In this document: in pieces, positions 5,301-44,300 of the stretch
Numbering within the stretch: the stretch's first letter is position 1
Layout: every line of letters starts with the position of its first letter
Assembly: GCF_006345805.1 (NCBI RefSeq)
Contig: NC_043019.1
Coordinates: 30,751,360 to 30,815,359 of the forward strand
Origin: Octopus sinensis
Taxonomy: Eukaryota
DNA: 64,000 nt
Direction: 5' to 3'
Made by a program: the position numbers and the translations under genes
Notes under the pieces: generated by a model
The model's database searches: none
Seen by the model: the letters and a program-made list of their open reading frames with translations, nothing else
Told to the model about the DNA's origin: nothing

Positions 5301-8300
5301 AGCTAGTGCGGATGCGCGACTATGCAAGTGCATGCACTGGGACCACTCTTCTTAAGTAGTACCGAGTTGGATATTTCAGACCAAAATTTATAACCAGAAA
5401 GGATAGGTTTGGCTTGTGAAATGCAACAGGGTGATTTTTGAACATTCACATTACATGTTTACACAATATACTACATAAACTTGTATGCCAGGAAAGATTG
5501 TACATGCACGCATCATCCTTATCAGCATCGTCATCGTTTAACATCTGTTTTCTATGCTGGCATGGGTTGGCTGGTTTGAGCGGCAAGCTGGCAGAAACGT
5601 TAGCAGGCCGGACGGTATTTCTTCTGCTGCTATGTTCTGAGTTCAAATTCCACCAAGGTCGACTTTGCTTTTCATCCTTTCGGGGTCGATTAAACAAGTA
5701 CCAGTTACCCACTGAGGTCGAAGTAATCGACCTAATCTGTTTGTCTGTCCTTGTTTGTCCCTTCTGTGTTTAGCCCCTTGTGGGTAGTAAAGAAATGGGT
5801 TTGCCATGGAGCTGGCTAGCCATGGAACTGTTCAGACTCCAAATTGTCTGTTGTGGCATGGTTTTTATGGCTGGATGCCCTTCCTAACATCAACCACTTT
5901 ACAAAGTAATCTGGGTGCTTATTACATGCCACTGGGGGCATTATACAGTACTGGCATAAGTAAAAAAAAAATGTAAAGTAGATGGATTTCTGAACTACAT
6001 ACTCATGAAATTTGCATACATGCGGTTGAGTATTCCACAGACATTTGTGTTCTTAATGTGTGTAAGATTTACAAAAACTACGAAAACTTACCTTCATGTT
6101 TTCCTCTCGGACATCAAAACCAGAGCTTCCAAGTGAAAAGTCGTTCTTGCTGTAATTGCAATTTTGACAACAGGTGAGCTTGGATTTAGAAACAGAAATG
6201 TTAAACATTGCAGTCATGCCTTATACGATTATTACTGCACATTATATGATTTCCAGGTATATTATTTTAGCCCTGCGTTAGAATGAGTACAATAGAAATT
6301 TCATGTCCTTAATGAAGTCCTGTCGACATAAGCTCATTTGTGAGCCAATTCCACATCCAGTTTTTTAAAATCCAGTTGGCTCAAAGTTTCCTTTCTTTGA
6401 CATTTTTGATATTTCATGGGTAATACATGAACATTTCCCTTCTAAAATTACCTGGTTTTATACATCTATCTATATATGAGATTATTTGATAATAATAATA
6501 ATGAAATTATTGTATACAGTGCTCAGGTGCACCACAAAGTGCTCAAGTGCACCACGCAATGCTCAGGTGCACCACGCACTGCTCAGGTAACCATGCAATG
6601 CTGAGGTGCATCATGCAGTGCTCAGTGCACCACGCAATGCTCAGTGCTCAGGTGCACCACGCAGTGCTCAGGTGCATCACACAGTGCTCAGTGCACCACG
6701 CAATGCTCAGGTGCACCGCTATAAAAGCGTATGGTTAATATGGAAGTAATTTCTCATTGATATATGTCCGTAGTTTGACTTCCATTGCCAACAACAGGAA
6801 AAAATGAAAATGCATAAACACCGCAACTTCCTGTTTTTTATTTGGTATTTCGATATTTTTTCTTTTATTGAATGGAATCCATAGCTTATAAAACGAGGCA
6901 TTGACTTATGACTTCATGCTTTTTTACAAGTTAATTTATGATGTTCTTAAACATCTTGACTTTACATTCCTTTTCATCTAATTCACCCATTCATAGGGAA
7001 GCAATTTTATCTATATTTTTTTTTACACATATCATTCAATATATATATAAATAAATAAATAAATATATATATATATATATATATGTATGCATGCATATAC
7101 ACACTTAGATATAATGCAGGAACACACACATAGACACACACAAACACATACAATCATATTGCATTCAATTATATTTCTCTAATATTTATGATTGAAAGAT
7201 CTCCTTCTGTAAAACACACCATTCCAGCTGCTTCTGTCTACTTAGCTAAGAAATTATTGGCAGATAGCTCACCAAGTTGACATGAAGAATGGAATCTCTC
7301 TGTAAGAAAAATCTACAGCAGATACCAATCTGTCAAAGTGAAGTTAGCTTAACTGAGGCTCATTGGAACCAATGTTGGTTTTACATAAGGAACATCCAGC
7401 TGTTTCAGTCATTTTTATCGTGGCAACTTTCCACTAACATTTTCTTCATCTCACCATGAGTCATAAAATAATTAAACATACCCAATTAGAACTATACATT
7501 GACTTTTCATACAGCAGCAGCATATCAAACATTTGATTTTGTTTTTCATGCATTTGCCAAATTGTCTGCAAAATACTATGGTTTAGCAAAAGCTAAAAGA
7601 AAATGAAAATTTTTACTGATAGCATACCAAGTCTTCATCATTACATTTTTTTCCCCATCATCTTTTTTTCTTTTCAAGTACTATACGAATACACATACAT
7701 ACTATGTATACTATCTATTTCTACTCACATAGTATGATTAATTTATCAAGGAAATCCAGCTATAGATTACTTAGATTAACAATCAACATCAGAAACCATT
7801 AAACCCTCAGGTACGACTATACTTTGGTTTTTTTTATAGAACTGTTTATAGAACTTTTCAATAGATTTATGCATTTGCCAAAATTACCAGCATAATACAA
7901 TTGCTTACCAAAAGTAAAAAAATATACTGGATAACTTTTCGAATAATTCGTTATCATCAGATCATTTCTCTTCATTCTCACTATCTACTTCTACTTTCTG
8001 ACTGTAATTAGTTTAGTTTTAAAAGAAATCAACCGGTATAATACTTGCACTAGTTCTCAAAGTATGAGCACATTCCTGTACATTGCGGAGAATTAATGGA
8101 ATATATTTAAAAAGACTATAACAAAAGTCAACGTCTTAAATTTTTCCATTGCAAGCCAAGGCTTAAAAAACTCTATGAGAGTAGCTTAAGCTGTTAGATA
8201 TAGCAGCTGAATTTTGCATAAATTCTCCCTAAGAATTGTATGAAAGGTACACATACTAGTAGCATACTCATTCACTTTTTTGCTAATTCAAATACTAAAC

Positions 8301-41300: not shown

Positions 41301-44300
41301 ATTATTTTTCACAACTTTATTATTATTATTTTTATAGGCATAGGAGTGGCTGTGTGGTAAGTAGCTTGCTTACCAACCACATGGTTCTGGGTTCAGTCCC
41401 ACTGTGTGGCACCTTGGGCAAGTGTCTTCTATCATAGCCTTGTGAATGGATTTGGTAGACGGAAACTGAAAGAAGCCCGTCGTATATATGTATATATATA
41501 TATATATGTTTGTGTGCCTGTGTCTGTCCCTCCAACATCGCTTGACAACCAATGCTGGTGTGTTTACGTCCCCGTAACTTAGTAGTTCGGCAATAAGAGA
41601 CCGATAGAACAAGTACTAGGCTTACAAAGAATAAGTCCTGTGGTCGATTTGCTCGACTAAAGGCGGTGCTCCAGCATGGCCACGGTCAAATGACTGAAAC
41701 AGGTAAAAGAGTAAAAGAGTAACTGTGAATTTACTTAAACTTTTTGGCTTGTATTGTAGCTCAGGAAAGAGAAATGCATTTTTGATTACAGTCCACAATC
41801 CACTTGAGTTCTTCCAATATTAACATAGCAGTTCTATTTTTTGTTGTGGTTTTCAAACTAAATATAAACCAATGCTAATTCATTTTTTCTCTCGTTTCTG
41901 CACCAAGTTTTCTTAGTGAGTGTGTGTGTTTTTGTACAGTCGATCCATTCACTTCAAGATGTCTATCAATTTTTGAATGGCTTCAACCATGTGGATGATG
42001 TTCTGTGACTTCTGTGGCTCAGCAGTAGAAGTATTTGTGGTTTATAGATGTGGCATAGGGGCAGGGGTGGCTGTGTGGCTAAACAGCTTACTTCTCAAAA
42101 ATGTGGTCATAGAGTCACTCCTACAGCATACCTATTTCTTTACTGCCCACAAGGGGCTACACACAGAAGGGACAAACAAGGACAGATAAACAAGGACAGA
42201 CAAACGGATCGACCCCAGTTTTTCACTGGTACTTAATTTATCGACCCCGAAAGGATGAAAGGCAAAGTCGACTGTGGCCGCATTTGAACTCAGAACTTAA
42301 AGGCAGGCGAAATACTACTTAAACATTTTGCCCAGCATGCTAATGATTCTGCTAGCTCACCGCCTTCTGAACTAAATATATAACTAAGAGTATAGAGAAA
42401 AAAATTATACCCAGGTTACACTTGTGTGCCGTGGCATTCCAGTTGCAGAGCACTGCACTATGGTGTTCTAAAAAAAAGTTTACTTCAGCTGATCCAGTTG
42501 TCTATTAGTTTGGAGTTTCCTTAACACCTAGCAGGGGCCATTGGGTATAATAAGCTAGATGAGGAAGATAGACTGCTTCTTGTAACAGCAAAGAGAAGGG
42601 AGCATTTAGTCAGATGAATGACTGGACTGCATGTAGATAGAAGCATATATAATTAGCTGGTTATCTACTTGAATCACAGAACACACAGGCTTTAGCCAGC
42701 ACTCAGCAGAAAAGGCTCAGCAGAGATGAAAACAAAGGAGCAATGGATAAAAGGTGATTGAGGAAACAGTGTCTATTATCATCATCATCATTCTTGTTTG
42801 ATGGTCACTTTTCTATGCTTATATGGATCAGAGGGAATTTGTTGAGACAGATTTTCTATGGCTGGGTACCTTTTTTGTCATCAACCCTCACCTGTTCTCC
42901 AGCAAGGTATTATTTCCCCACAACCAGATGTGTTTTTCACAGGAGACTGGAAGTGAACGACATTGCTTGTATGACAGTGACACTCTCATTTATAACTATC
43001 ATGTCAAGAAAGTGGTACACACAGACACACACACCACATACACACACACATACACACACATACACACGCACACTCACACACACACACATACATGTGTGTG
43101 TATCTTTAGGTGTGTAAATATATATATATATATATATGATTAGTAAATTTACGAAACCAGTATGCTTTTAAATCTCTTTAACAGTTCACAATAATGACTT
43201 TTATTACTTTTATTCCTACCTCAGTTCATCTAATCGTATATATCTATCATTACTTTTCATAAAAAGCCTTTACTTTTTTTGATTTCCAATGTGCATTTTC
43301 ACTTATTTTTCTTCTTACTTTCCCCCTATATATATATATATATATATATATATATATATATACATATATATATGCCATTTGAGCATGGCTGTTGCCAGTA
43401 CCACCAGACTGGCCCTTGTGCCTGTGGCATGTAAAAGCACCCACTACACTCTCAGAGTGGTTGGCATTAGGAAGGGCATCCAGCAGTAGAAACTCTGCCA
43501 GATCATGATTGGAGCCTGGTGAAGCCATCTGGTTCGCCAGCCCTCAGTCAAAATCGTCCAACCCATGCTAGCATGGAAAGCGAACGTTAAATGATGATGA
43601 TGGGCATCTGCCAAATTCAATCACAGGGCTTCGGTCGGCCCAAAGGTATAGTAGGAGACAATTGTCCAAGTTGCTGTGCTGTGCAGTGGGACTGAACCCA
43701 AGAACATATGGTTTGGAAGCAAACTTCTTACCCATACAGTCACACCTGTACCTATCTCTATTCTATTCCTTTCTAATTCTGTTCTTAAAACTTAGAAACT
43801 CTATTGACCAGAATCACAGGAGTCACTGGAGAGGGACATTGAAGCAGTGGGACGAAGAAGGACTGATCTATGGCATGTTTTCAACTAGTGACATAGTGAA
43901 TGGTCCAATGAGCGGGCATGAGAGGAAGGAGTGGCAGATGTGGTGGACGGGAGTGAATACTGTGAACTATATGAAAATCAAATTCCAATACCAAATATTT
44001 AAGTAAACAGCAATACCAAAGAAAAAAAATTAAATTCCAACTTACCAAAGGACTGTCTGGACCATAAGTTTCACTGACCTTCACCAAATCATCAATGTAC
44101 CAAGTGATGAGGTGAGGCTGGACAACAGGTGGGAATTTTAACTGTTGCACAATATACCACATAGCTAATTTCGTTGGAAGAGATCTAATAATAATAATAA
44201 TAATAATAATAATAATAAAAATAAAAATAATAATAATAATGATGATGATGATGATGACAATGATGATGATAATGATGATGATGATGATGATGATGATGAT

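Follow-up and report, generated by a model that had tools for sequence, protein, structure and literature searches.

ENPPs are well-studied zinc ectoenzymes. All seven vertebrate members share a conserved two-zinc site, in which seven conserved residues hold the two ions: Zn1 is bound by an Asp and two His, and Zn2 by two Asp and a His together with the nucleophile, a Thr or, as in ENPP6, a Ser (PMC8808174). Here, we analysed a stretch of 64,000 nucleotides of the Octopus sinensis genome (assembly GCF_006345805.1, contig NC_043019.1, positions 30,751,360 to 30,815,359; hereafter ‘the window’, in whose coordinates positions are given), which holds part of LOC115223464, a gene annotated as coding for an ‘uncharacterized protein’ of 2163 amino acids (XP_029649912.1). 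Like vertebrate ENPP3, ENPP1 and snake venom phosphodiesterase (PDB 6f30/6f33, 6wet, 5gz4), this protein displays a common unit of catalytic and nuclease-like parts together with the GLYPESHGI and VSDHG motifs, and the type II membrane anchor of ENPP3 and ENPP1 is also predicted for it. It differs from these two by having three units instead of one, by being devoid of somatomedin-B domains, and by a first unit that lacks five of the seven catalytic residues as well as the base-stacking Phe. We consider it highly probable that this unit 1, predicted to lie next to the membrane, is a conserved non-catalytic module inside a three-unit ectoenzyme that is still active.

An earlier note, made from the letters of the window, had described a stand-alone ENPP1/3-like protein. 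A protein search (query padded to 1830 amino acids) led to XP_029649912.1, of which the segment concerned is a portion of the first of three units; as to the label ‘ENPP1/3-like’, it suits the catalytic and nuclease-like parts, but not the missing somatomedin-B domains. The gene lies on the minus strand, covers more than 252 kb with at least 52 exons, and extends past both window ends. When XP_029649912.1 was mapped by chained exact matches on the 264 kb around the window, 52 exons were located for residues 27-2123, with an AG acceptor and a GT donor in 52/52 and conserved phases. Nine of them, coding for residues 146-445, lie in the window (53354 to 2301, minus strand), and the nine canonical, in-frame and stop-free exons of the earlier description are all recovered in this exact map, with continuous phases; the span then proposed, 6092-44184, exactly brackets exons 7 to 11 (exons D to H of that note).

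The three units were found head to tail on the minus strand by a whole-genome PF01663 scan, with exon-level matches inside the window, and, within the 264 kb, by profile and tblastn searches. Each consists of an NPP catalytic domain and a nuclease-like domain (unit 1, residues 88-784; unit 2, 785-1473; unit 3, 1474-2163). The three-unit protein (P0121) belongs to the PF01663 family, which it matches in three stretches (E = 1e-207), and contains two PF01223 matches, including residues 547-752; by its nuclease-like domain, unit 1 falls in the ENPP1-3-like branch. The scan of the genome with PF01223 gave no match on contig C23, the nuclease-like domains being confirmed on the spliced protein only, and somatomedin-B (PF01033) matched neither on contig C23 nor in P0121. 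Residues 1-87 comprise a short N-terminal tail, a hydrophobic segment (residues 34-54, IFALFGIMTLLCTAIGVGVGI, by sequence inspection) and a Thr-rich stretch. The product is thus a putative type II membrane protein, in which a hydrophobic segment and a Thr-rich stalk would precede the three units.

The junctions between units show that they belong to one polypeptide. Unit 1 closes with a nuclease-like exon that continues, without a stop codon, into a linker (...LWNVPNSQPWLKQECSQEKACE; ...RTFLSPYLWNVPNSQPWLKQECSQEKACE); the donor of this exon is GTAAGT in phase 2, which matches the acceptor phase of the first exon of unit 2, 1.8 kb downstream, and the junction between units 2 and 3 is of the same construction. 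Three separate tandem genes are ruled out by these stop-free, in-phase junction exons, which leave no room for a separate first exon. LOC115223464 hence has the characteristics of a molluscan multi-unit ENPP, i.e. at least three units in one open reading frame (ORF) with linker-bearing junction exons. The cuttlefish orthologue (P0137, clustering at at least 90% identity with Acanthosepion pharaonis CAE1329719.1) is represented by at least 12 transcripts of 6.7-7.1 kb, assembled independently of one another and each with one ORF of 2135 amino acids holding all three units. Thereby, the single-ORF reading does not depend on gene prediction alone.

Catalytic residues were then compared unit by unit, with equivalences taken from a profile of 73 diverse NPPs and cross-checked against the solved ENPP3 and ENPP1. 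At the seven positions (in ENPP1 numbering order: D218, T256, D376, H380, D423, H424, H535), unit 1 reads G100, S136, V255, E259, D302, H303, S406 in Octopus; G, T, V, Q, D, H, S in the cuttlefish; and G, S, V, H, D, H, S in Argonauta (P0157 and locus L033). All three Zn1 ligands are therefore replaced in Octopus, D376 by Val255, H380 by Glu259 and H535 by Ser406: the exchanges that the earlier note had read in exons D (Asp to Val, His to Glu) and H (His to Ser) agree with the peptides and with the alignment to ENPP3, ENPP1 and the 73-NPP profile. Its description of a preserved Zn2 motif was right for Asp302/His303 of VSDHG (D423/H424), as well as for Asn157 (N277). The Zn2 site is nonetheless not intact, the first Zn2 Asp being Gly100. 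This exchange had been missed because the exon carrying Gly100 and Ser136 lies outside the window; the recovery of upstream exons suggested in that note did yield it, 10 kb away, with degenerate motifs (AIGHF...TLSSPNLY) in place of those expected around the catalytic Thr and first Asp.

The damage to unit 1 goes further. In Octopus and Argonauta, Ser136 replaces the nucleophile Thr. The base-stacking Phe that comes next is Ser137 in Octopus and Gln in the cuttlefish, and the near-invariant His of TFPNH is Leu140 in Octopus; the Asn157 position is kept in octopods and is Asp in the cuttlefish. Octopus unit 1 consequently lacks five of the seven zinc and nucleophile residues, only Asp302 and His303 being unchanged and Ser136 being a possible nucleophile, and does not show the seven-residue set of an active NPP. 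The GLYPESHGI motif is conserved in unit 1 of all three species. A six-frame motif scan of the 264 kb detected no alternative exons with canonical motifs for unit 1, such as the EPD..GH and G.HG exons which, according to the earlier note, would have spoken against its proposal; the canonical DGFR, TFPNH, EPD..GH and G.HG.D occur in unit 3 only.

In unit 3, all seven residues are canonical in both Octopus and cuttlefish (Argonauta unit 3 was not recovered), so the whole gene product is probably still an enzyme, with unit 3, the farthest from the membrane, as the likely sole phosphodiesterase head in cephalopods. Unit 2, which reads H, S, N, H, D, H, Y in Octopus and S, N, D, H, D, H, H in the cuttlefish, appears to be dead in a different way from unit 1. 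Its motifs are degenerate in Octopus (SLHNF, KSLPNLY, YLKTPNPDLH, KKLNYDLD); in the cuttlefish, all three Zn1 ligands are retained, and the first Zn2 Asp and the nucleophile are lost.

The age of the losses can be estimated from their distribution. As Octopus, Argonauta and cuttlefish have the same Gly, Val and Ser in unit 1, these replacements predate the octopod-decapod split, roughly 250-300 million years ago. The H380 ligand was lost later and independently, since its position holds His in Argonauta, Glu in Octopus and Gln in the cuttlefish; the Argonauta motif with the retained His reads WYIEDLVTVSHTYGP. Among 75 near-invariant columns (conservation of 85% or more in the 73 NPPs, which range from bacterial to vertebrate proteins), 56 are kept in Octopus unit 1 and 60 in cuttlefish unit 1, and 8 of the 19 losses in Octopus are catalytic residues or fall inside catalytic motifs.

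We also computed the ratio of non-synonymous to synonymous substitution rates (dN/dS) between Octopus and Argonauta by Nei-Gojobori counts, on an alignment of 475 codons from the N-terminal region and unit 1. The proportions of differences were 0.243 for non-synonymous (pN) and 0.726 for synonymous sites (pS), corresponding to a dN of 0.29, a dS of about 2.6 and a dN/dS of about 0.11; the uncorrected pN/pS was 0.335 (bootstrap 0.29-0.39). Between Octopus and cuttlefish, where synonymous sites are saturated, dN amounted to 0.568 in unit 1, 0.552 in unit 2 and 0.507 in unit 3, i.e. the dead units evolved only about 10% faster than the live one. The pattern of unit 1 is thus indicative of selection, not decay, as the earlier note had supposed: the substitutions are common to three cephalopods, dN/dS is well below 1 and 56/75 near-invariant positions are kept.

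These results leave little to the idea of unit 1 as a relic in decay, or as the artefact of a gene prediction that fused three tandem genes, with an intact frame that would be fortuitous. Such a view could draw on the O. sinensis record, which is a computational model for which no O. sinensis transcript turned up, on two exons (46670-46637 and 20714-20565) too diverged for profile searches, and on the Argonauta annotation, which splits the locus into fragments. Set against this are a 697-codon unit that is open in three lineages, the splice sites and phases of the 52 mapped exons, the low dN/dS, the junction exons without stop codon or space for a separate first exon, and the cuttlefish transcripts with three units in one ORF. 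We regard this explanation as extremely unlikely and already largely refuted. In Argonauta hians, the orthologous locus (L033; GCA_054771915.1, BAAFZT010000137.1:16870289-16915607) is annotated as fragments of 223, 137 and 344+ amino acids, and the N-terminal exons and unit 1 lie within about 43 kb, versus more than 130 kb in O. sinensis.

The retention of the fold was examined at the levels of sequence and predicted structure. Unit 1 matches ENPP3 of the PDB with a phmmer E-value of 7e-86 over 658 residues (the alignment running to unit residue 660), so that its homology is not due to chance. An AlphaFold2 model of residues 88-764, built from a 76-row alignment, reached a mean predicted local distance difference test score (pLDDT) of 86.1 and a predicted template-modelling (TM) score of 0.89. 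The best Foldseek matches of this model, which span both domains, were ENPP3 (TM 0.86-0.87, E = 1e-59), ENPP1 (0.85-0.86) and cobra venom phosphodiesterase (0.82-0.84). Unit 1 could accordingly be described as a pseudoenzyme domain, combining a predicted enzyme fold, the loss of catalytic residues and signs of maintenance by selection.

What unit 1 would do instead of catalysis can be outlined as follows. From the loss of five of seven essential residues, we infer that it would have no hydrolytic activity. Its fold has been held by purifying selection from before the divergence of octopods and cuttlefish, possibly as a rigid spacer keeping the active head far from the membrane or, alternatively, as a binding surface for a ligand, substrate or partner. 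Receptor protein tyrosine phosphatases combine an active D1 and a degenerate D2 in one chain, the inactive copy being conserved, and could offer a parallel for a duplicated catalytic domain of which one copy is inactive but maintained. Fold and chemistry are unrelated, however, and the dead domains of the octopus protein are predicted to be extracellular and nearest to the membrane, with the active head farthest away.

A specific version of the binding-module idea, as opposed to a purely structural spacer, is that the dead modules are regulated decoys or sensors, which would bind nucleotides or nucleic acids uncleaved and pass them to unit 3 or withhold them from it. Many conserved pocket-lining residues are retained, and the substrate groove is predicted with high confidence; moreover, a nuclease-domain ENPP rises 4.6-fold in Dreissena plasma after poly I:C, which hints at nucleic-acid-related roles of such ENPPs in molluscs. 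However, Ser137 in Octopus and Gln in the cuttlefish take the place of the base-stacking Phe, the phosphate-binding metals would be gone, and the Dreissena protein induced by poly I:C may be another than the multi-unit one. We therefore see this function as rather unlikely.

Another possibility, raised in the earlier note, is that unit 1 is still an enzyme with a single-metal site, formed by Ser/Thr136, Asp302 and His303 and perhaps acting on a new substrate. Indeed, Octopus, Argonauta and cuttlefish have all conserved the nucleophile Ser/Thr, Asp302 and His303, i.e. three of the four residues of the Zn2 site, together with the GLYPESHGI motif, Asn157 is retained in octopods, and Ser is a working nucleophile in ENPP6 (PMC8808174). 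The remaining Zn2 Asp is nevertheless Gly in all three species, Zn1 is wholly lost in Octopus and cuttlefish, Asn157 is Asp in the latter, and no mononuclear enzyme of the NPP family was found in the literature searched. The replacements, being hydrophobic or small (Val, Leu, Ser, Gly), are unlike a rebuilt metal site, and Val255, Leu140, Ser406 and Ser137 rather resemble the filling of a pocket. With Gly100, Ser137 and Leu140 the damage reaches beyond Zn1 into the Zn2 site, which makes such an enzyme very unlikely. Also very unlikely is a re-tooled unit 1, working as a mononuclear or metal-independent hydrolase or as a covalent binder through a Ser/Thr136-Asp302-His303 triad in the NPP fold; if true, this would be a chemistry undescribed for the NPP family, and cephalopods would possess three functionally different heads on one membrane stalk.

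Several points weigh against a conserved non-catalytic unit 1 as we propose it. The dN/dS estimate is rough, dS being near saturation, and it derives from tblastn-aligned stretches, which are biased toward conserved parts. A search with a 228-residue fragment for octopus transcript fragments retrieved the Argonauta fragment only and no sequences of O. vulgaris or O. bimaculoides, which is why no unsaturated dN/dS could be obtained. The O. sinensis evidence consists of a Gnomon model only, expression being seen in the cuttlefish and not in O. sinensis itself. The NPP likeness of the structural model is partly built in, as the input alignment consisted mostly of canonical NPPs: it is a sign of compatibility with the NPP fold, and no independent proof. 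The spacer or binding role is suggested by analogy only. Finally, the conserved Ser/Thr136, Asp302 and His303, with Asn157 in octopods, may leave a residual one-metal or phosphate-binding site.

The three-unit arrangement is widespread in molluscs. The protein search retrieved ENPPs with three or four units (1900-2960 amino acids) in about 20 bivalves and gastropods, among them Crassostrea, Ostrea, Mytilus, scallops, Mercenaria, Mya, Dreissena, Haliotis, Littorina, Pomacea and Nucella, as well as three further transcript-derived ORFs. Proteins of this kind (e.g. Crassostrea virginica LOC111119482, 2288 amino acids; Mya arenaria, 2960; Haliotis, 2947), which databases list as ‘uncharacterized’ or ‘ENPP1-3/EXOG-like’, have a transmembrane segment, a stalk and three to four units like the octopus protein, and in both groups the units are joined by W..C..C linkers. 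The two groups differ in the state of their heads: two of three would be dead in cephalopods, whereas all scorable units of the bivalve and gastropod proteins, and of those of an annelid and a priapulid (see below), keep all seven residues, with unit 2 of Dreissena as sole exception. ENPP6 has a Ser nucleophile, comparable to Ser136 of Octopus unit 1, but is active, keeps its metal ligands and has no nuclease-like domain.

In a tree of the units, the last units of molluscan proteins formed one clade that includes cephalopod unit 3 (support of 97 in the Shimodaira-Hasegawa-like approximate likelihood ratio test, SH-aLRT). Octopus and cuttlefish units 1 were paired with a support of 100 and units 2 with a support of 98; both lie on long branches and have no clear bivalve counterpart. 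As for the Dreissena exception, unit 2 of Dreissena polymorpha LOC127876504 (P0141, approximately residues 829-1505) has Glu for D376 and Leu for H380, and reads RLEQPELAGL and TLTLPNLY; this is an independent, convergent and partial loss of the Zn1 site. In unit 1 of Octopus and cuttlefish, and in unit 2 of Octopus and Dreissena, Leu stands in place of the TFPNH His. The annelid Owenia fusiformis (P0147/P0148) and Priapulus caudatus (P0001) also have predicted ENPPs in which two or more tandem units are joined by the same W..C..C linker. The tandem arrangement may therefore have arisen before molluscs, or the Owenia and Priapulus models may be prediction fusions.

Full-text literature searches returned no account of ENPPs with several units, nor of a pseudoenzyme among ENPPs. 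Two features thus appear to be undescribed: molluscs, and probably an annelid and a priapulid, with two to four complete ENPP units per polypeptide, and the long-term retention by cephalopods of two of three units after loss of their metal sites. In Paroctopus, homologues of ‘venom phosphodiesterase’ show high expression in the posterior salivary gland and the digestive gland; octopus gland transcripts of this kind may derive from LOC115223464. Beyond the correction of the annotation (the locus is one large gene and not a stand-alone pseudoenzyme), bivalves with all heads predicted to be alive and cephalopods with one alive and two dead could form a natural comparison, and this contrast a handle on the use of a non-catalytic NPP fold and on the cooperation of tandem heads.

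Elsewhere in the O. sinensis genome, PF01663 matched a 297-codon exon with a canonical ENPP4/5-like domain (L001, G000:C19:48322288-48323067; SFDGF, KTFPNH, EEPDHTGH, TSDHGM), two isolated exon-like stretches (L006, C11629:1372-1578; L010, C17:15606435-15606578) and an ORF on C5 resembling a GPI ethanolamine-phosphate transferase (L003).

The features of the locus are listed in the following table.

Coordinates of LOC115223464 exons, diagnostic motifs and repeats, in window positions (exons 4 to 12 by exact protein-to-genome map)
Feature	Position	Strand	Residues	Remarks
Exon with Gly100 and Ser136	74364-74193	-		10 kb outside the window; AIGHF...TLSSPNLY
Compound microsatellite	59168-61576			about 2.4 kb, in the intron upstream of exon 4
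Exon 4	53232..53354	-	146-186	ends ...WWQGEP; Asn157 (ENPP1 N277); acceptor ttttag, donor gtaagt; PF01663 match at positions 52-94
14-residue peptide of exon 4	near 53328	-		
Exon 5	50542..50611	-	187-209	phase 1 at end
Exon 6	46637..46670	-	210-220	34-nt mini-exon; tatattacag / gtaagt
(ATT)n/(ATC)n microsatellite	44185-44260			directly before the exon 7 acceptor (44184)
Exon 7 (D of the earlier note)	44046..44184	-	221-267	Zn1 Asp to Val255, Zn1 His to Glu259; aligned to ENPP3 ‘iyveepdsaghksgpvs’ and profile column table
17-residue peptide of exon 7	44052-44102	-		
Exon 8	28644..28752	-	268-303	...NIIIVSDH(G); Zn2 ligands Asp302/His303 retained
NIIIVSDHG	28642-28668	-		
Exon 9	20565..20714	-	304-353	variable surface segment
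Exon 10	12348..12477	-	354-396	
Exon 11 (H of the earlier note)	6092..6149	-	397-416	third Zn1 ligand His to Ser406; aligned to ENPP3 ‘ggthgyn’
LGSSGFD	6113-6133	-		
Exon 12	2301..2388	-	417-445	final window exon of the gene
Units 2 and 3	-28426 to -101040	-	785-2163	C23:30722934-30650320
SINE-like / repeat copies	22761-22558, 19313-19128, 15620-15237, 5054-4842, 2259-1852, 410-141; also 8686-8387			

The other eight exons of unit 1 lie, with units 2 and 3, beyond window position 1. Two window exons are known from the exact protein map: exon 6 was not detected by splice-aware exon searches, nor was exon 9 by profile and paralogue searches. The peptide of exon 6 corresponds to YHPDNYEKYT of unit 3, where a homologous 34-nt exon was found, and the segment encoded by exon 9 has a low pLDDT (58-67) in the AlphaFold2 model. 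An alternative acceptor at 44164 and skipping of the exon after DHG, which would also keep the frame, were dropped, both exons 6 and 9 being present in the NCBI model. A tblastx comparison of unit 1 with its neighbouring units revealed no exons and was dominated by microsatellites and short interspersed nuclear element (SINE) repeats.

The long microsatellite that immediately precedes the exon 7 acceptor consists, in the frame of this exon, of successive Ile codons and replaces the ordinary polypyrimidine tract. In the compound microsatellite upstream of exon 4, a CA/TG-rich part reads THTHTH and CVCVCV and is followed by a YLSI-type repeat; it yields the longest stop-free frames of the window (up to 402 amino acids), which are without coding meaning. 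The introns are filled with SINE-like copies, 70-95% identical to other copies in the locus, and one retroelement-like fragment shares 88% protein identity with a copy located in a unit 2 intron.

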